A stretch of DNA of 64,000 nt from Ranitomeya imitator (Eukaryota), in assembly GCF_032444005.1 (NCBI RefSeq), contig NC_091290.1, forward strand, positions 57,722,001 through 57,786,000, given 5' to 3'. Below, one piece after another: positions 1-44,511 of the stretch. A program made the position numbers and the translations under genes. Numbering within the stretch: position 1 is the stretch's first letter; every line of letters starts with the position of its first letter. The notes beneath the pieces were generated by a model. That model worked only from the letters and a program-made list of their open reading frames with translations. It made no database searches and was not told where the DNA came from.

Positions 1-7200
<7,200 letters not shown>

Positions 7201-15398: not shown

Positions 15399-17083
15399 TC
15401 TCTAAACTTCTCGAACGCCTGGTCCACTCCCGTCTTACCCGCTATCTCTCAGATAACTCTCTTCTCGATTCTCTTCAATCTGGTTTCCGATCTTTACACT
15501 CTACTGAAACTGCCCTCACTAAAGTCTCTAATGACCTACTAACAGCTAAATCTAATGGTCACTACTCCATGCTAATTCTCTTGGATCTCTCTGCAGCATT
15601 CGACACTGTGGATCATCAGCTCCTCCTCACTATGCTCCGCTCCATCGGCCTCAAGGACACCGTTCTCTCCTGGTTCTCCTCCTATCTCTCTGACCGATCC
15701 TTCACTGTATGTTTTGCTGGTTCCTCCTCCTCTCACCTTCCCCTTACTGTTGGGGTTCCTCAAGGATCAGTCTTAGGTCCCCTCCTCTTCTCTTTGTATA
15801 CTGCTCCTATTGGACAAACAATCAGTAGATTTGGTTTCCAGTACCATCTCTATGCTGACGATACCCAATTATACACCTCTTCTCCTGATACCACACCGAC
15901 CTTTTTACTAAACACCAGTGATTGTCTTACCACTGTCTCTAACATCATGTCCTCCCTCTATCTGAAACTGAACCTGTCAAAAACTGAACTCCTCGTGTTT
16001 TCACCCTCTATTAACCTACCTTTGCCTGACATCTCCGTGTGCGGTTCCACCATTACTCCCAAGCAACATGCCCGCTGCCTTGGGGTCATACTTGATTCAG
16101 AGCTTTCATTCACCCCCCCACATCCGATCACTGGCTCGCTCTTCTTATCTGCACCTCAAATACATTTCTAGAATTCGCCCTTTTCTTACTTTCGACTCTG
16201 CAAAAACTCTTACTGTTTCACTTATTCATTCTTGTCTGGACTATTGTAACTCTCTACTAATCGACCTCCCCCTTACAAAACTTTCCCCGCTCCAATCTGT
16301 CCTGAATGCTGCTGCCAGGATCATATTCCTCACAACCGTTACACCGATGCCTCTACCTTGTGCCAGTCATTACACTGGCTACCCATCCACTCCAGAATCC
16401 ACAACAAAACTGCTACCCTCATCCACAAAGTAGTGCATGGCTCAGCACCACCCTACATATCCTCTCTGGTCTCAGTTTACCACCCTTCCCGTGCCCTCCG
16501 TTCTGCTAATGACCTCAGGTTAGCATCCTCAATAATCAGAACCTCCCACTCCCGTCTCCAAGACTTTACACGTGCTGCGCCGATTCTTTGGAATGCACTT
16601 CCCAAGTTAATACGATTAATCCCCAATCCCCACAGTTTTAAGCGTGCCCTGAAAACGCATTTGTGCAGATTGGCCTACCGCCTCAATGCATTAACCTAAC
16701 TGTCCCCGTGTGGCTCATTCAAAAAAACAATCGGGTTCCTCGCAACATGTTCTCATACACTTTATGCAGTTAATAGCCCTCTGTGTCTGTACTGCTACAT
16801 ACTTAGGCAGTTAACTGGTTCATGCAGCTTTACATGAACACCCGAACATTACACTATGGCCAGTCCGAATAACTAAAGCAATTGTTACCATCCACCTCTC
16901 GTGTCTCCCCTTTTCCTCATAGTCTGTAAGCTTGCGAGCAGGGCCCTCATTCCTCTTGGTATCTGTTTTGAACTGTGATTTCTGTTATGCTGTAATGTCT
17001 ATTGTCTGTACAAGTCCCCTCTATAATTTGTAAAGCGCTGCGGAATATGTTGACGCTATATAAATAAAAATTATTATTATTAT
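15399..17083 (+). mobile_element. 5'-truncated L2 LINE, RT domain with frameshifts plus 3' UTR
   Basis: [48 protein letters not shown] spread over three frames; ends aataaaaattattattattat. Confidence 0.92.
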
Positions 17084-17503
17084 AGCTTGCCTGCCCTGAA
17101 CTGAAAGCCTACTCTCAGTAACCTTGTGTGCAGTTTATAAGATGGGAGAGGAGAAAGAGAGAGAGAGACAAGGACCCACCTCCAGGTCCTTCAATGAACC
17201 AATACACTTTACATAGATAGCTGATGGCCGAATAGCTATTTCTCACAGATCAGGTATTTACATGCACATTTGACCTTACTTGTATGTTTTTTCCAATAGA
17301 CTACAGTGAAAAAGCGTTATTTTCTAAAGGAATTAATGAATTGGCATGTTGAAATCCAACATGCCCCATCCTTCTTACCACTGATGTTTGCTATTGAGGA
17401 AGAAGTGTTGAATGGCCACCATAAACATGAGTATGACAGCAATCCATGATCACTACAACACTTTCTCTAATGCAAGTCCTCATTAAATTCCTTCTGTAGT
17501 ACT

Positions 17504-20195: not shown

Positions 20196-21806
20196 CAGGT
20201 CCTTCTCAAAAAATTAGCATATAGTGTTAAATTTCATTATTTACCATAATGTAATGATTACAATTAAACTTTCATATATTATAGATTCATTATCCACCAA
20301 CTGAAATTTGTCAGGTCTTTTATTGTTTTAATACTGATGATTTTGGCATACAACTCCTGATAACCCAAAAAACCTGTCTCAATAAATTAGCATATTTCAC
20401 CCATCCAATCAAATAAAAGTGTTTTTTAATAACAAACAAAAAAACCATCAAATAATAATGTTCAGTTATGCACTCAATACTTGGTCGGGAATCCTTTGGC
20501 AGAAATGACTGCTTCAATGCGGCGTGGCATGGAGGTAATCAGCCTGTGACACTGCTGAGATGTTATGGAGGCCCAGGATGCTTCAATAGCGGCCTTAAGC
20601 TCATCCAGAGTGTTGGGTCTTGCGTCTCTCAACTTTCTCTTCACAATATCCCACAGATTCTCTATGGGGTTCAGGTCAGGAGAGTTGGCAGGCCAATTGA
20701 GCACAGTAATACCATGGTCAGTAAACCATTTACCAGTGGTTTTGGCACTGTGAGCAGGTGCCAGGTCGTGCTGAAAAATGAAATCTTCATCTCCATAAAG
20801 CATTTCAGCCGATGGAAGCATGAAGTGCTCCAAAATCTCCTGATAGCTAGCTGCATTGACCCTGCCCTTGATGAAACACAGTAGACCAACACCAGCAGCT
20901 GACATGGCACCCCACACCATCACTGACTGTGGGTACTTGACACTGGACTTCAGGCATTTTGGCATTTCCTTCTCCCCAGTCTTCCTCCAGACTCTGGCAC
21001 CTTGATTTCCGAATGACATGCAAAATTTGCTTTCATCAGAAAAAAGTACTTGGGACCACTTAGCAACAGTCCAGTGCTGCTTCTCTGTAGCCCAGGTCAG
21101 GCGCCTCTGCCGCTGTTTATGGTTCAAAAGTGGCTTTACCTGGGGAATGCGGCACCTGTAGCCCATTTCCTGCACACGCCTGTGCACGGTGGCTCTGGAT
21201 GTTTCCACACCAGACTCAGTCCACTGCTTCCTCAGGTTCCCCAAGGTCTGGAATCGGTCCTTCTCCACAATCTTCCTCAGGGTCCGGTCTCCTCTTCTCG
21301 TTGTACAGCGTTTTCTGCCACATTGTTTCCTTCCAACAGACTTACCATTGAGGTGCCTTGATACAGCACTCTGGGAACAGCCTATTTGTTGAGAAATTTC
21401 TTTCTGGGTCTTACCCTCTTGCTTGAGGGTGTCAATGATGGCCTTCTTGACATCTGTCAGGTCGCTAGTCTTACCCATGATGGGGGTTTTGAGTAATGAA
21501 CCAGGCAGGGAGTTTATAAAAGCCTCAGGTATCTTTTGCATGTGTTTAGAGTTAATTAGTTGATTCAGAAGATTAGGGTAATAGGTCGTTTAGAGAACCT
21601 TTTCTTGATATGCTAATTTATTGAGACAGGTTTTTTGGGTTATCAGAGTTGTATGCCAAAATCATCAGTATTAAAACAATAAAAGACCTGACAAATTTCA
21701 GTTGGTGGATAATGAATCTATAATATATGAAAGTTTAATTGTAATCATTACATTATGGTAAATAATGAAATTTAACACTATATGCTAATTTTTTGAGAAG
21801 GACCTG
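20196..21806 (-). mobile_element. Full-length Tc1 (IR/DR-type) DNA transposon, 1611 bp
   Basis: ~200-bp TIRs (20196-20395 / 21608-21806) each with aaattagcatat at both ends; TA TSD (20194-20195 / 21807-21808); uninterrupted transposase. Confidence 0.95.
20474..21478 (-). CDS. Tc1 transposase, 334 aa from MGKTSDL, DD34E triad
   Basis: HTH region (IIDTLKQEGKTQKEISQQIGCSQSAVSR), FSDESKF, FQHDLAPAH, 34 residues, then NSPDLNPIE. Confidence 0.93.
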   Translation of the reverse strand: MGKTSDLTDVKKAIIDTLKQEGKTQKEISQQIGCSQSAVSRHLNGKSVGRKQCGRKRCTTRRGDRTLRKIVEKDRFQTLGNLRKQWTESGVETSRATVHRRVQEMGYRCRIPQVKPLLNHKQRQRRLTWATEKQHWTVAKWSQVLFSDESKFCMSFGNQGARVWRKTGEKEMPKCLKSSVKYPQSVMVWGAMSAAGVGLLCFIKGRVNAASYQEILEHFMLPSAEMLYGDEDFIFQHDLAPAHSAKTTGKWFTDHGITVLNWPANSPDLNPIENLWDIVKRKLRDARPNTLDELKAAIEASWASITSQQCHRLITSMPRRIEAVISAKGFPTKY

Positions 21807-36182: not shown

Positions 36183-38964
36183 GCTGTGTGGCTCTCTGTA
36201 ACTTATAAATTCTTAAGCACCACTCTATAATATAGTAATGCCGGGTGCAAGTGCCCTAGAAAACAGTGCCCACATTGTGCCCCCTAGAAAGTAATATTGC
36301 CCTGTGTGCCCCTTTGACAGTCACAGTAACCTGAGTTCCCCTATAACAATAAGTGCCCACTTTACATTTAATAATGTCCCGAGTCTCCCCCTGCACAGCT
36401 CCCCTATACACAGTATTATGCGCTCTTATACACAGTATAATGACCACAGCACTGTATCGTAGCCCCCACACGAAATGCTGACCTCTTAGAAGTCCCAAAC
36501 TGTATGATGGCCACAACATTGTATGATGGCCATCACAGTAGTCCCCACACTGTACAATGACCCCCTCAGTAGCCCCCACACTGTTCAATGACTCCCTCAG
36601 TAGCCCCCACACTGTAGAATGACCCCCTCAGTAATCCCCACATTGTTTCAGTGCAACATTAGTAGCCCCCAATCTATATCATGGACTTTTAGTAGCCCCC
36701 CCCCCCCCCCCCACTGTTATGGTCCCTGAGTAGCCCTCACACTGTGTCATGATCCCCCAGTAGCTCTTACACTATGATGACAACCTCAGTACCTCCTACT
36801 TTGTATCATGGTCCCCTACGTAGCTCCCACTCTGTATCATGGTCCCTTTAATAGCCCCAAGACTGTATTATGGCCCCTCTGTAGCCCTCACACTGTGTCA
36901 TGACCACCTTAGTAGCCCCCAAACTGTCATGGCTCCCTCAGTAGCTTCCACACTGTATGATGACCCCCTCAGTAGCCCTCACAGTGTCATTACCCCCTTA
37001 GTAGCCCCCGCACTGTGTCATGCCCCCCTTAGAAACCAAAACATTGCATCACGGTCCCCTCAGTAGCCCCAACACTGTATGATGACACCCTCAGTAGCCC
37101 CCACACTGTCATTGTCCCCTTACTAGCCCCCATGTTCTATGATAGCTCCGATAGTAGCCCTCACAGTGTGTCATGGCCCCCTTAGAAACCAAAACATTGT
37201 ATCACGGTCCCCTCAGTAGCCCCAACACTGTATGATGACACCCTCAGTAGCCCCCACACTGTCATTGTCCCCTTACTAGCTCCCATGTTCTATGATAGCT
37301 CCAATAGTAGCCCTCATAGCCCTCACTATGCATGATAGCCTCCCCTAATAAACATCATTTACTCGTACACTTACCTCGGCAAGTCCAACAGCAGACAGTG
37401 GCAGGGAACAGATGAATGTAGTGATGTAATCGCACCAGAATTCACGTTCCGTGTGTCGTGGCTCAATTACGTAATCGCGCCGCTCCGCTTTGGACCTCCT
37501 GCGCACGCTGATACAGTTGCAAATTATGTATCTCCAGGTGGGCTCCCTGCAATCACCATTCAGTGACTGACAGAGGCCTTTAAATGGATAAACCTTCAGT
37601 GATCGGAGCAAGCTCCAGTTGCTTCAGTTACAGGCGGTTTTTGGCTATGTAGCATAGCCGGCATCTGCTGCATATGAAGTGGGCTCTGCTACTGAGTCGG
37701 TTTCATACAGCCCTAAGAGACCAGTGACAAAACTACATCATAGGTTAAAGGGAACCTGTCATGTAGAATAACACTATTAACCTGCTGATATGGCGTTATC
37801 TGGCGCAAGTTCGATCATCATTCTATGTATAGAGAGCGGCGGCTGTATCCAGGCCCCGGCACTCACTGATAGACTGCCCTAATGCTAGCCTGGTAGTGGC
37901 ATTAAAGGAGTGGAAGAAGCTCATGTGTGAACAGCAGCTACAGATAGGAGTGGGCTGCACTTGTGTCCCCCTCCTCAGGATCGGCTGCCTTGTTGTCCCC
38001 CACAGTATTAGACCCGCTCACTTCCACTCTCTGCCTCCTTGTGGTGCTTTGCAGTCGCTCTGCACATGGACAGATAAATCCTCTTCTGTAGCTGGCACCG
38101 ATGAGGATCGGGGTGTGGGAGGAGGAGGTACAAAGTGATCGCACCGCCGCACCACGGGGCTTTGTCAGGTAAACCCTGCTCATGTGTGTGCCTGTACAGA
38201 TTATAAAGTTTATTCAAATAAAAAAAGCTAACTAGAGATCCGGGGCAGTGCACTCATGATCCGAGCCCTACTGATGAACTTGGTGGGCGGCCCCTGCAAT
38301 CACACCCTGACACTGACTGACAGTCGGATATATACTGATGCACTGCTGAGCCGGCTGTCAGTCAGTGCCGGGACGTAGTTACAGCTGAAGTTTCACCGAA
38401 ACCTTTAAAGTTCTTGACCAGTTTAGAAAACTCAATATCCATTTGCCATTTATTGGAATCTGAGGCAACTGAAGGGACCCGTTCTGAATTCTCATCCATT
38501 AGTGAGAATGCAGATGACCAATAAACAGCATTCTCTGCTCTGGAGGAACCAACACTTCCATGATTTCCGTGATTACAGAGGACAATGTGTAATACCTAAT
38601 TTCTCCTTTGGAGGTGCTGTAGGGAAGTTCAGCATTTGCTACAGGGTATTCACTTACTGCAGGAGGTTTGTGTAGAAGGGATCAATTTGGTCTTTATTCA
38701 CAGCACATTGGGGCTTTACCTCTGACCCATATGGAGAAGCCTTACATGAGACTGGACGACCCCATCAAGGTCCATAGTGCTGGAGAATAAGAGTCAGGGG
38801 CTTAACCCACATTCGCTACATGGACGTCGGATGAAATAAGGACAAAAACAACAATGTAGGGGAAAAACAGATAATTTATTTATAGATGGGGGTTATAAAT
38901 TATTATATATTTTATTATTATGTAGATGTGTAAATTATTACTCTATCAGAATAATTCTATTTAT

Positions 38965-39099
38965 GAGCCGTGTTGATCCAGAGGAAGGCGAAAACCCCCT
39001 GTGAGGAATCGGCCAATTATCCTCATATAAGGGGGAAAAATTCCTTCCTGACCTCAAATAAAACATGGCGGGCAGAATAAATCCCAGGATCAAGGGCTC
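38965..39099 (-). ncRNA. Structured RNA module A with ENE-like U-rich internal loop
   Basis: Minus strand AGGAAGG-AAUUUUU-CCCCCU..UGAGGA..UCCUCA..AGGGGG-UUUUCG-CCUUCCU (core 38982-39049) inside outer stem gagcc/ttgatcc...ggatcaa/ggctc. Confidence 0.6.
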
Positions 39100-39354
39100 A
39101 TAGCTAATGTGTATATGTAAGTTTAATCTAAAAAATATATATTATTTAAAATTATTATTATTATTTTTATATAAATGTCTATTATATAAAAATATAAAAG
39201 TAATTTCTATTTTTGGACTAATTTATGTTTATATTTGTCTACTAAATTAATGTAAATAAAAAATATTATATTATTATTTTACATAAATTATATATTTTTT
39301 TATTATAAACATAAGAAACTACTTATTTATTCTACTTTACTAAACCTATCTATT

Positions 39355-39483
39355 GGCCGTGTTGGTCCAGAGGAAGGCGAAAACCCCCTGTGAGGAACCG
39401 GCCAATTATCCTCATATCAGGGGGGGAAATTCCTTCCTGACCCCAAATATGGCGATCAGAATAAATCCCAGGATCAAGGGCTC
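39355..39483 (-). ncRNA. Structured RNA module B (ENE-like, 5' U-tract shortened to U3)
   Basis: Core 39371-39438, same stems as module A. Confidence 0.55.
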
Positions 39484-39676
39484 ATAGCTAATATGTCATA
39501 CCTAAGTGTAATTTATTATTTAGAAATTTTCTATTTTTAGACTAATTTATTTTTATATTTATGTTAACTATTTTTTTAAACCCAAAAAGAAATTCTATAT
39601 ATATTTATTTTGTTTATTTTTTTTTGTTATAAACATAAGAAACTACTTATATATTCTAATTTCTAAACCTATCTAT

Positions 39677-39805
39677 GGGCCGTGTTGATCCAGAGGAAGG
39701 CGAAAACCCCACGTGAGAAACGGGCCAATTGTTCTCGTGACGGAGGAAAAATTCCTTCCTGACCCCAAATATGACGATCAGATTAAATCCCAGGATCAAA
39801 GGCTC
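39677..39805 (-). ncRNA. Structured RNA module C (ENE-like)
   Basis: Core 39694-39760; upper stem carries a compensatory change (gagga/tcctc to gagaa/ttctc). Confidence 0.6.
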
Positions 39806-39983
39806 GAGCCTAATCTGTAAAGTGTGGAAGTGAGATTTTTAAAAAATATTTTACTTAGTTGTTATTTAGAATGTTATTGTTTTGTGTAAAATAAACTATT
39901 TCTGATTTATTTATTTTTTTTAACTTTTTTGGACTACTTATGAGGGAATCTACATATTAATATATTGTACTAAACCTATTTAA

Positions 39984-40110
39984 GGCTGTGTAGATCCAGA
40001 GGAAGGCAAAAACCCCCATGAGGAATGAGCCAATTGTCCTCATATTAGGGGAAAAAATTCCTTCCTGACCCCAAATATGGCGATCAGATTAAATCCCAGG
40101 ATCAAAAGCC
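39984..40110 (-). ncRNA. Structured RNA module D (ENE-like, U6/U5 loop)
   Basis: Core 40000-40066; outer stem ggct...agcc preserved. Confidence 0.6.
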
Positions 40111-40788
40111 GAAATCTCTAACTACATGCTATGTGTCTATGTGGGGGCCTATACGTATCATGTAGTGTGGGCCTAAATCTATCATGTAGTCGGGGTGATG
40201 TGGATGTGATGGGTTATGGGTGAAATACTTACCCGGCCTGTGCTGAGGTGAGTTCAGGGATTATGGCCCATATTAGACTATTATTCCTGAACTCACCAGA
40301 TGGACACTAAGCACAGGCCTCTCCCGATGGCACAGAAGATCTTCGGGCTTGAGTGATGTGAAGAACTAGCCCAGGATTGGGCTGGTGCAGTGACACAAAG
40401 GCAGTGGTCCGACATGAAGATGTTATGGAGAGACATGATGTTCTAGGGCAGCTGAGGTGACAAACAGCAGCAGAAATATCAGGTACGGGTTAGGAGGCAC
40501 AAACTTCTATCTGCTGGATCTTCTGTTATCATAGAGGAATGGTCATCATAATGAACCATTCACCTATGAAACATCAGATATGATGTATGGGTATAATCGG
40601 TGTCCTGTGTGTACAGCGGCCACTCACCTGATGGTCTTCGATGGTTTCACAGCCCAGATCTTCTCATCCATCTAAGAATAACAGAGAGATGGTCATTGGC
40701 AGAAACACTGGGAAAGGACAAGGACGGTGATAATGGCCACAAGGTGAGAAGGACATTTGATGTGATTTATCCTCAGAGAAAGTTGATC

Positions 40789-41347
40789 TTACCGGGCCCA
40801 GCTTGGTGACACATAATTGAAGCCGGCCATGGGGTTAAGGGCTTTTTTTTCCTCCGGCCACTGCATAAGATGTTTCTCCAGAACTGGCCTGAAGGGTATG
40901 AATGGCGGCTGTGCTCTCCTTTCCTCCAGATCCTCCCAGCCGATGGTGGTAAAGAATGGATGCTCTCGGATGTTCCCGCTCACACCCAATCGCTTATGAG
41001 GCTTTTTGCACAGCAGCTTCTTGATGAGATCTTGCATGTCCGCATCAAGCCAAGATGGAATTTCAGGCTCTTCTTTGGTAATAGCTCTGTAACCCATTTT
41101 GCTGACGGAGCCGGTATAAAATGGGGAGTGTCCTGTTGCCATCTCGGACACCACGATCCCCAGGCTCCACCAATCCACTGCTGTACCATATCCTCTTTTG
41201 CGAAGCACCTCTGGGGCCATGAAATGGAAAGTGCCCGTCATTCCAGAGATATTATTGGAGGAGGTGACGCCATCTTGGGCAAGCCCAAGGTCGATGATAC
41301 GGATGTGGCCATCGGCATCCAACATGATGTTATCCGGCTTAATATCT
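40789..41347 (-). CDS. PKC/AGC-like Ser/Thr kinase, last exon (subdomains VIb-XI plus AGC tail)
   Basis: Acceptor cag|AGAT; (R)DIKPDNIML, IIDLGLA, GTFHFMAPE, DWWSLG, PPFIP, GFNYVSP, stop. Confidence 0.88.
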
Positions 41348-41514: not shown

Positions 41515-41577
41515 CGGTGGACGATGTTGTGTCCGTGGAGGAACTGGAGGCCACATACGATCTCTGCTGTGTAGAAT
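41515..41577 (-). CDS. PKC/AGC-like kinase, exon 3 (FYTAEIVCGLQFLHGHNIVH-R)
   Basis: 63-nt exon with cag| acceptor and |gtaag donor, phase 2 at both ends, completes HRD. Confidence 0.88.
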
Positions 41578-42378: not shown

Positions 42379-42838
42379 TGTGTGCTGCTCATGAATCTGC
42401 CCATCTGTAGATGTCCCCGTACACAGCTGATGGTAATGTCGGCATCACCGGTGATGTACTGTGCATGCGCCGGTCCCTGGACTTCCTCCTTCGTAAATAG
42501 TGCCTTCCTGCTCATCGCGTCTGGAACGCAAGCGTGGAACGCTATGAGTCACAATGGTGAGCAAGGCTGGAAGCCACGGGGAAGTTCCTGACCTGCGCAT
42601 GCGCCAACCGGGCGCCTTGAATCACAAAGAACATAATGGAGCTATGAATAAGAATAGAGGGAATCCGGGCAGGCAACAAGGTGCCGTTGTTGAAAAAGGG
42701 GGATTTTTAGGAAATATGGGCTTATATGTATCTATTTATAAAGTGCATAATTATTAAATCTAATAAAAATTACATATGTTTATAAGTCATGTGTGAAGTA
42801 TAATAATGAAAGAAACCTAGTGCACAAATATATATCAA

Positions 42839-44511
42839 CTAGATGGTGGCCCGATTCTAACGCATCGGGTATTCTAGAATATGCATGTCTACGTAGTATA
42901 TTGCCCAGCCACGTAGTATATTGCCCAGCCATGTAGTATATTTCCCAGCCACGTAGTATACAGCACAGAGCCACGTAGTATATTGTCCAGCCACATAGTA
43001 TATTGCCCAGCCACGTATACAGCAGAGCCACGTAGTATATTGCACAGCGACGTAGCATATTGCCCAGCCATGTAGTATATAGCACAGAGCCACGTAGTAT
43101 ATTGCCCAGCCACGTAGTATACAGCACAGAGCCATGTAGTATATTGCACAGCGACGTAGCATATTGCCCAGCCACGTAGTATACAGCACAGAGCCACGTA
43201 GTATATTGCACAGCCACATAGTATATTGCCCAGCCACGTAGTATACAGCACAGAGCCACGTAGTATATTGCACAGCGACATAGCATATTGCACAGCCACG
43301 TAGTATACAGCACAGAGCCACGTAGTATACAGCACAGAGCCACGTAGTATATTGCACAGCGACATAGCATATTGCCCAGCCACGTAGTATACAGCACAGA
43401 GCCACGTAGTATATTGCACAGCCACGTAGTATACAGCACAGCCACGTAGTATACAGCACAGCCACGTAGTATATTGTCCAGCCACGTAGTATACAGCACA
43501 GAGCCACGTAGTATATTGCACAGCGACCTAGTATATTGCCCAGCCTTGTAGTATACATCACAGAGCCACGTAGTATATTGCCCAGCCTTGTAGTATACAG
43601 CACAGAGCCACGTAGTATATTGCCCAGCCACGTAGTATATTGTCCAGCCACGTAGTATACAGCACAGAACCACGTAGTATATTGCACAGCGACCTAGTAT
43701 ATTGCCCAGCCTTGTAGTATACAGCACAGAGCCACGTAGTATATTGCCCAGTGACGTAGTATATTACCGAGCCATGTATGTCACAGGTTAAAAAAATAAA
43801 CATACTCACCCATCAATCCGAGGGCCCCTTGTAGTGTAACATACTCACAATTCTTGTTGCTGCTCCTCAGCGTCCCGTCTCTCCACTTCCTGGGATCCAA
43901 CGGCGCTGTGCAGATGGGCACGCGGCTGCCGCCATCTTGCGTTCCCAGGATGCTTTGCGAAATTACCCATATGACTTAGCGGTCTCGCCAGACCGCTAGG
44001 TCTTTTGGGTAATTTCGCAAAGCATCGCTGGGAAAGGAAGATGGCGGCAGGCGTGAGCGGACAACGGAGGGTGAGTATAGCAGGTTTTTGTTTTTTTTTT
44101 ACTATTTTTAACATTACTTTTTTTTACTATTGATGCCGCATAGGCAGCATCAATAGTAAAAGGTTGGGGATACACAGGTTTAATAGCGGCGGTAACGGAA
44201 TGCGTTACCCGTGGCATAACGCGGTCCGTTACCGCCGGCATTAACCCTGTGTTAGCGGTGAACGGAGGGGAGTATGGAGCGGGCGTCGGGAACACTGACT
44301 GCGGGGAGTATGGATCGGGCGCCGGCCACTGACTGCGGAGAGTATGGAGCGGCCATTTTCTTCCGGACTGTGCCCATCGCTGATTGGTCGAGGCTGTTTT
44401 GCGGCGACCAATCAGCGACTTGGATTTCCATGATAGACAGAGGCCACGACCAATTAATATCCGTGACAGAAGGACAGACGGAAGTACCCCTTAGACAATT
44501 ATGTATATAGA
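42839..44511 (-). mobile_element. Non-autonomous Helitron-type element with internal 20-22-bp minisatellite
   Basis: Minus strand begins TC (44511-44510) after A, ends hairpin cccgat..atcggg + 8 nt + CTAG (42842-42839) before T; repeats cacgtagtatattgcccagc at ~42890-43760. Confidence 0.8.

Follow-up and report, generated by a model that had tools for sequence, protein, structure and literature searches.

Expression and nuclear retention elements (ENEs) are stem-loops with a two-sided U-rich internal loop, accompanied downstream by a poly(A) tail or an A tract (PMC7583470, PMC12501189). In the PAN ENE of KSHV (Kaposi's sarcoma-associated herpesvirus), five U-A-U triples and additional A-minor contacts are formed (PMC7583470, PMC12501189), and G-C pairs directly beside the U tracts have been reported to be essential for ENEs (PMC12501189). 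Such elements are known from viruses, from MALAT1/MEN-beta, from plant, fungal and slime-mould transposons and from a stickleback retrovirus (PMC7583470). The known 3' end of CR1, a long interspersed nuclear element (LINE), consists of a hairpin and an octamer microsatellite (PMC4316615). In this study, we analysed a 64,000-nt stretch of the genome of the frog Ranitomeya imitator (NC_091290.1, positions 57,722,001 to 57,786,000; referred to as the window, with all coordinates counted from its first letter), in which four tandem copies of a structured RNA module lie in the 3' untranslated region (UTR) of a short kinase gene of the protein kinase C (PKC) delta type. We find the module to be homologous to the beginning of the frog CR1 3' UTR and to accompany the same kinase family in several frog lineages, and propose that it is probably a domesticated CR1-derived regulatory RNA element.

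The array is composed of the following parts:

39983-40112, minus strand: module D, first in the mRNA (150 bits with covariance model CM R1; supported by its fold; inside a spliced RNA contig, X6 record 24)
39677-39806, minus strand: module C (covariance-model match; covered by RNA contigs)
39354-39484, minus strand: module B (covariance-model match; RNA contig depth 23-49)
38965-39100, minus strand: module A, last in the mRNA (covariance-model match; RNA contig in run X5 only)
39101-39982, minus strand: inter-module stretch from A to D, holding modules B and C and three AT-rich spacers
39101-39353, 39485-39676 and 39807-39982, minus strand: the spacers, 47-50% A on the mRNA strand and 78-88% A+T

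The original prediction, made from the letters of the window, had described four tandem modules of about 130 nt on the kinase strand, which agrees with what we observe: the copies are direct repeats of 130-136 nt each on the minus strand, spaced 389, 323 and 305 bp from start to start and 85-94% identical in pairwise comparison. A 20-mer core motif occurs four times against zero expected and nowhere else in the 64 kb, where a covariance model built from the four copies and run without filters likewise returned no further module. The U tracts on the 5' and 3' side of the internal loop measure 6 and 5 nt in module D, the most ENE-like copy, 5 and 4 nt in modules C and A, and 3 and 4 nt in module B, the 5' tract of which has shrunk to UUU. 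The stretch from 39101 to 39982 contains nine AAUAAA/AUUAAA hexamers, modules D, C and B each have A6-A9 runs about 52 nt to their 3' side, and module A lies about 85 nt upstream of an AAUAAA that is conserved in the family. The two AATAAA hexamers previously pointed out at 38911-38916 and 38875-38880 are both present on the minus strand. Since the spacers are partly homologous (repeat families D3 and D6), the repeat unit comprises module and spacer. With head-to-tail units of 305-389 bp including the spacer, the layout is that of a minisatellite, the period of the corresponding Pristimantis arrays being 251-266 bp. The original prediction, in which the spacers were described as not conserved, is to be corrected as to this partial homology. 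Viral contigs scanned for the 18-mer GTTGATCCAGAGGAAGGC gave 0 matches, and the 53 matches to it in metagenome contigs, none of which was accompanied by the rest of the module, were discarded as chance. A full-text literature search for the motif string led to a single, unrelated paper.

The transcript carrying the array is outlined by four features:

40793-41347, minus strand: large kinase-domain exon of the short PKC-delta-like kinase (Pfam Pkinase, 1.4e-27; match to P0001; splice joints)
40628-40671, minus strand: 44-nt exon with the true stop codon at 40649-40647, giving a C-terminus of ...SPSWAR joined to WMRRSGL and stop; the same structure is found in Dendropsophus
40113-40451, minus strand: first part of the last exon, which belongs to the 3' UTR and precedes the modules (splice joint 40451/40628; alignment to L062, the Dendropsophus locus)
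38830-38884, minus strand: predicted poly(A) signal region, with AAUAAA at 38880-38875 and a U/GU-rich downstream element, aligning to Dendropsophus and Pristimantis gene ends

The best protein match of the kinase is P0001 from Ranitomeya imitator (100% identical), the public annotation of which stops at ...SPSWAR. RNA contigs from four runs define minus-strand GT-AG introns at 41577/41734, 41347/41515, 40671/40793 and 40451/40628. The genomic open reading frame (ORF) at 40789-41325 is not terminal, since the splice at 40793 skips its stop at 40789; the 44-nt stop exon is followed by an intron within the 3' UTR and then by the last exon, from 40451 onwards. A mismatch-free contig of 1005 nt joins 40982-40793, 40671-40628 and 40451-39681 and thereby runs through module D into module C, additional RNA contigs carry coverage to about 39240 in module B, and module A is covered in one run only. 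This transcript evidence consists of assembled contigs, which break in the AT-rich spacers. Because spliced contigs link the kinase exons to the last exon with its modules, the modules are transcribed within the kinase 3' UTR, and kinase transcripts do not end before 40110 but continue through D and C to B. The earlier placement of the modules 0.7-1.8 kb past the kinase stop was correct in putting them downstream; the distance requires revision, as the real stop lies at 40647-40649 and module D follows about 360 nt after it in the mRNA.

Two further features were observed in the last exon upstream of the modules. A hairpin at 40297-40247, formed by an inverted repeat of about 50 nt (GGTGAGTTCAGG...CCTGAACTCACC), is kept in Dendropsophus and degenerate in L055, a transcript contig of another hyloid frog, and shows weak miRNA-precursor-like Rfam matches, far below threshold. 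Just upstream of the first module, at 40234-40227 on the minus strand, the 5'-splice-site-like motif GGGUAAGU is found, through which RNA contigs pass unspliced. As GGUAAGU or GGUGAGU, this motif is conserved in four genera, occurring also at about 13785 in L062, about 1322-1340 in L055 and about 4787 in the kinase pseudogene L059. Motifs resembling 5' splice sites can be recognised by U1 snRNP and influence polyadenylation or retention in the nucleus, and those of the GGUAAGU type cause nuclear retention and decay in other systems. The gene itself is a member of an extensive hyloid frog family of short kinases named 'protein kinase C delta/theta type-like' (200-520 aa, mostly 200-430), for which our data suggest tens to hundreds of paralogs; a literature search on the expansion of this short kinase family turned up no paper. 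The depth of DNA contigs over the kinase exon is about 20-40 times that of low-depth contigs assumed to be single-copy in R. imitator, and several hundred-fold in another species (X28).

Minimum free energy (MFE) or centroid folds of the minus strand reproduced the proposed fold scheme in each of the four copies: an AGGAAGG/CCUUCCU lower stem, a two-sided U-rich loop and a C/G upper stem, topped by a GAGGA/UCCUC apical stem and enclosed by an outer GAUCC stem with a side hairpin. The single-sequence z-scores of the folds are modest, at -0.3 to -3.2, the plus strand folding about equally well. The compensatory change claimed for copy C is real (G-C to A-U in the apical stem), and copy D carries a second one. 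When 13 kinase-linked modules were aligned to the model, pairing was seen in 94.4% of cells and double changes in 10 of the 38 pairs, values that were reached by 0 of 500 shuffles, while slid controls pair at 39-63%. As this alignment leans towards the model, the test was repeated with MAFFT and RNAalifold on 17 sequences, which independently recovered the outer stem, the side hairpin and the 7-bp lower stem. In this second set the outer stem has changed from GAUCC/GGAUC to GAUUC/GAAUC in six copies, and an A-U pair of the lower stem to G-C in four. Five GGAAG/CUUCC pairs are invariant across the 13 kinase-linked modules, the 5' loop AAUUUUU is nearly so, and the 3' tract consistently comprises U alone (4-8 nt), the next residues being Y and one of G, U or A. 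Homologs retain both U tracts while their stems covary, as the proposed structure demanded. Where present, the apical stems differ (GAGGA/UCCUC, GACACA/UGUGUC, CUGAGGC/GCUUCAG) around a conserved AAUUGG loop; in the Pristimantis contigs L057 and L058, in module L060a and in Dendropsophus the apical hairpin is absent, indicating that it is dispensable. The opposed U tracts, which never mutate into pairs, are the feature that every model of this element must explain.

The likeness to CR1 3' UTRs that the original prediction had suggested proved accurate. In Xenopus laevis (L061) two model matches of 55 and 60 bits (CM R1) were obtained, and a CR1 copy in Dendropsophus L062 scored 59 bits. Between 18200 and 18840 of L061, the CR1 ORF2 C-terminus (recognised by LEKRRLRGD... 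and FFT.RAV..WNSLP...) and its stop are directly followed by a sense module, an A-rich linker, the hairpin GGTTGAAC...TTCAACC and (TTACTATG)n. A truncated CR1 copy of the same layout is located at 5005-5160 of L062, where the truncated CR1 3' end (4800-5160) abuts an ORF with a cysteine-rich C-terminus that we take to be piggyBac-transposase-like. From both layouts it follows that the module is the proximal part of the frog CR1 3' UTR, and the U-rich loop sits on the CR1 sense strand. Neither a reverse transcriptase (RT) nor the CR1 tail accompanies the window modules, in line with the earlier description. As the terminal hairpin and the octamer microsatellite are both absent after them, the window modules are CR1 3'-UTR fragments rather than CR1 insertions; a hairpin resembling the CR1 terminal one does follow the Pristimantis modules. 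The sole RT in the window (15569-16171) is that of an L2-type LINE, the tail of which is different, for which reason an origin of the module from the window's own LINE was ruled out. Over the modules, and not over the spacers, the depth of DNA contigs rises 5- to 100-fold in R. imitator as well as in three other species. We initially considered this depth as proof of a purely dispersed transposable element (TE), a reading that we replaced: the pile-up probably reflects abundant CR1 3' ends together with many kinase paralogs. The existence of close dendrobatid orthologues is suggested by DNA contigs from other species spanning the borders between modules and flanks. In X. laevis (L061, CM030356.1), a family member is situated inside the extent of a gene of Beclin-1 type (BH3/APG6 domains) that has the same orientation, so that in this species, too, the kinase is nested in another gene; the only CR1 modules near this kinase belong to one CR1 in an intron and to a truncated copy 1.7 kb beyond the gene, and there is no tandem array.

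Beyond the window, modules in sense orientation were found with paralogous kinase genes in three other frog lineages, as the original prediction had anticipated:

L055, sense: transcript contig of another hyloid frog, kinase 61% identical; one full module 200 nt past the stop and the start of a second
L060, sense: Pristimantis genomic contig with 2 modules
L057, sense: Pristimantis genomic contig with 3 modules and an internally deleted mini-module
L058, sense: Pristimantis genomic contig with 3 modules and an internally deleted mini-module
L062, sense: Dendropsophus kinase gene with 1 module

The mini-modules (L057 14082-14126, L058 5491-5534) precede the full modules and consist of the outer stem GATCCAGGG...CCCTGGATC alone, the interior being deleted. 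In Pristimantis the modules stand directly after the gene end, in 53.6 kb that contain no other match at E < 0.3, and strong matches elsewhere in the searched contigs were confined to the two CR1 copies of L061 and the one of L062. The Dendropsophus gene shares the exon ending in WMRRSRL and stop as well as the 3'-UTR intron with the window gene, and the 3' UTRs of both species align from the start of the last exon to a common AAUAAA with a GU-rich site. Through this alignment, 38880-38875 is identified as a conserved poly(A) signal in the window, module A lying 85 nt before it; the distance from the end of the last module to an AAUAAA, itself followed by UGUGUGUG, is 73 nt in Pristimantis L057. 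A maximum-likelihood tree of the kinases groups the window gene, Phyllobates, Dendropsophus and L060 against L057/L058 and against L055. Module types track this tree, the first group carrying the derived states CCUGGGA and GGGGUC and the others the CR1-like CCAGGGA and GGAGUC, which argues for one old capture followed by vertical inheritance. The comparison points to lineage-specific tandem expansion from 1 to 4 copies thereafter, and we consider the CR1 origin and the single old capture to be highly likely. The kinase pseudogene L059, with in-frame stops, contains only broken half-modules, as one anecdotal case. The array had originally been regarded as a 'stability cassette' that was multiplied as such. 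With a copy number ranging from 1 in Dendropsophus to 4, this reading is not supported, and the array is to be considered a lineage-specific expansion of one conserved module.

We arrive at a model of the following kind, for which the CR1 origin, the transcription, the linkage throughout the kinase family and the covariation are shown, and selection as well as any molecular function is inferred. The first ~125 nt of a frog CR1 3' UTR, after the ORF2 stop, would have been incorporated into the last exon of a short PKC-delta/theta-like kinase gene in an ancestor, prior to the divergence of the hyloid families, and would have been inherited since along with the expanding kinase family. In R. imitator, the module and its AT-rich spacer would then have been duplicated in tandem to four copies. 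It would have been kept as a folded RNA comprising the outer stem, the side hairpin, the invariant GGAAGG/CCUUCC stem, the opposed U tracts and the C5/G5 stem, and may serve as a cis-acting 3'-UTR platform near the poly(A) site. There, the U tracts and the polypurine/polypyrimidine stem would be offered to a factor acting in trans, most probably a host protein that binds U tracts or structure, which once bound could affect 3'-end processing, stability or translation. A selected, structured platform binding a host factor is the function that we favour tentatively, at somewhat short of an even chance, and a platform for a protein in particular is to be regarded with at least the same reserve.

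The extent to which the module has been under constraint has to be weighed against a neutral history. In the latter, a 5'-truncated CR1 3' end landed in the ancestral 3' UTR and was turned into a minisatellite by slippage or unequal crossing-over, and the copies would be similar on account of slow mutation in frogs and of concerted evolution, not of function. The variable copy number of 1-4 and the great abundance of CR1 3' ends are in agreement with such a passenger, and a number of observations speak against a selected fold. Module identity of R. imitator and Dendropsophus is 91-94%, and that of the alignable flanking UTR itself reaches 83-84%, so that neutral divergence between the families is low; the excess over the flanks is modest (p=0.06, module D alone), and the comparisons are few and related. 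Within the window array, 6 pair cells are broken vs 2 compensated, which is not above neutral expectation, and among four related copies the compensatory changes of C and D carry little weight, the covariation term being about 0. Copy B is degenerate, with a partly lost U tract, the high copy number in the genome shows that most relatives of the module are ordinary CR1 3' ends, and part of the covariation may predate capture in CR1 lineages, if captures were multiple. However, the module persists across paralogs that are about 0.9 substitutions per site apart in protein, with a nearly identical 44-nt core, located at 14242-14285 in L057, and covariation exceeds that of shuffled and slid controls. 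In the recent paralogs L057 and L058, the modules are identical at 301/327 positions vs 634/737 in the rest of the UTR (p=0.006), and the 44-nt cores at 128/131, compared to 86% in the flanks. Indels avoid the core, while the flanks in the comparison with Dendropsophus contain many. From these alignments, in samples that are small and related, purifying selection on the fold is favoured; we regard it as likely that the module is maintained by selection and as rather unlikely that it is a mere passenger.

A rival to the host-factor platform is the ENE-type clamp of the original prediction, in which the U tracts would bind the poly(A) tail or the encoded A7-A9 runs in a U-A-U triple helix and thereby slow deadenylation or nuclear decay of the kinase mRNA. 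The architecture of a stem, opposed U tracts and a G-C-rich stem is present in folds as well as in the 13- and 17-sequence alignments. In the 17 copies the tracts vary in length and never gain A or G, the sole change being U to C in copy B, and the loop region is kept even in copies that lost the apical hairpin. The position is suitable as well, with A7-A9 runs 52 nt 3' of modules D, C and B, the conserved AAUAAA 85 nt after module A and, in three genera, a distance of 73-180 nt between the last module and the conserved AAUAAA. The U tracts of the CR1 copies and of L057/L058 and L055 reach 5-6 and 6-8 nt, and ENEs do occur in plant and fungal transposon RNAs (PMC7583470, PMC12501189). Against this, tract length and the adjacency of G-C pairs are ambiguous. 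About five or more U in a row per strand would be needed for the roughly five U-A-U triples of PAN; the 3' side has just 4 U in three of the four window copies and in the single Dendropsophus copy, B having 3 and 4. The C5/G5 stem abuts both tracts, and the G-C pairs of the lower GGAAGG/CCUUCC stem are set off from them by a conserved AA (5' strand) and by CG or UG (3' strand). No Rfam 15 family matched the array or its compact core beyond chance level at E up to 10. CR1 ends in a microsatellite and not in poly(A) (PMC4316615), rendering poly(A) capture unlikely as the ancestral role. The internal modules are located 0.4-1.2 kb from the conserved poly(A) site, and the side hairpin and outer stem, which an ENE does not need, are conserved too. 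It is thus unlikely, judging by the fold and its setting, that the frog CR1 3'-UTR core (GGAAGG-AA-U5-C5 ... G5-U4-8-CCUUCC) is a vertebrate ENE-type element domesticated by hyloid kinases to protect their mRNAs, and triple-helix formation and slowed decay are equally doubtful; an ENE-type module in kinase mRNAs may also act together with the conserved upstream GGUAAGU. Two other explanations start from the CR1 sequence itself. Sense CR1 in the mature kinase mRNA could expose it to antisense CR1 piRNAs or siRNAs in the germline, with stronger regulation the more module copies are present. CR1 is abundant in the R. imitator genome and tandem multiplication adds target sites, but such targeting predicts that modules track the local CR1 family sequence and not that stems change in a compensatory manner, while the kinase-linked modules of four genera share derived states and are mostly closer to each other than to local CR1, making this explanation very improbable. 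Least credible of all, with hardly any weight on our side, is a CR1-derived tail that lets the CR1 RT copy the kinase mRNA and so serves as the source of the large family. The CR1 3' UTR is the proposed RT recognition site (PMC4316615) and the family is indeed very large; however, introns are present in all copies examined, the window modules lack the CR1 terminal hairpin and microsatellite, and the apical hairpin with its conserved AAUUGG loop is missing from many kinase-linked copies. Expansion of the kinases by retrocopying was accordingly ruled out, as the genes contain introns.

Some further features of the window surround the kinase gene. Long tandem arrays flank it at 36536-37262 (period 31/62 bp) and 42780-43727 (about 20 bp), the latter yielding spurious long minus-strand ORFs. 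A high-copy dispersed repeat occupies 38500-38700, just past the kinase poly(A) site, and DNA contigs of four species break at 38586-38626. Further away, an L2-type LINE fragment is located on the plus strand at 15569-17085, whose RVT_1 ORF is accompanied by a tail of TGTAAAGCGCTGCGGAATATGTTGACGCTATATAAATAAA and then (ATT)n, and an intact-looking ORF of 355 aa on the minus strand (20474-21541; DDE_3 and HTH_Tnp_Tc3_2) encodes a Tc1/mariner-type transposase.

As a domesticated CR1-derived element, which is our preferred reading, the module can be placed among several known systems. With the ENEs of KSHV PAN RNA, MALAT1/MEN-beta, TWIFB1 and Evade it shares the two-sided U-rich loop beside G-C-rich helices, and with the transposon ENEs its transposon origin and its place in a 3' UTR near the poly(A) site (PMC7583470, PMC12501189). 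It differs in having shorter U tracts in most kinase-linked copies and two non-U residues per strand before the lower stem, in being part of a larger conserved three-helix fold, and in stemming from CR1, which has no poly(A) tail; unlike in a stacked double ENE, its copies are hundreds of nt apart. The literature searched contained no paper linking CR1 to ENEs and none describing the kinase-linked module. If the U-rich loop binds A tracts, triple-helix stabilisers would reach vertebrate LINEs and cellular mRNAs, and the module, if truly an ENE, would be the first of its kind in a LINE as well as on a vertebrate protein-coding mRNA family.

The closest relative is the frog CR1 3' UTR, in which the ~125 nt after the ORF2 stop (X. 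laevis, Dendropsophus) are homologous to the module on the same strand; lower stem, U tracts and C/G stem are shared, as is the apical hairpin capped by the AAUUGG loop. The window units differ from it by lacking ORF2, terminal hairpin and octamer microsatellite, by being tandem and not dispersed, and by being inherited with the host gene under derived states of their own (CCUGGGA, GGGGUC, UUUUCG). Stringent-type LINE stem-loops, such as that of eel UnaL2 or the CR1 hairpin with its microsatellite, resemble the module as covarying 3'-UTR stem-loops with a conserved apical motif (PMC4316615, PMC5135761). The module, however, is located upstream of the terminal hairpin to which the RT site is commonly assigned, and its apical loop is dispensable in kinase genes. 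It marks a conserved element of frog CR1 beside the ORF2 stop, distinct from the terminal hairpin that is usually discussed.

Host 3'-UTR elements derived from transposons, for example from short interspersed nuclear elements (SINEs), likewise represent TEs fixed in a terminal exon and transcribed in sense. If functional, the kinase module would be a clear case of a LINE 3'-UTR structure co-opted by a host gene family, with natural variants of one to four copies, with or without the apical hairpin, available for dissecting the fold. In contrast to those host elements, tandem copy number varies in the kinase family, and it is a LINE 3'-UTR fold that extends through an entire expanded gene family over the age of Hyloidea, which in the functional case would have been kept through both the large family expansion and the hyloid frog radiation.

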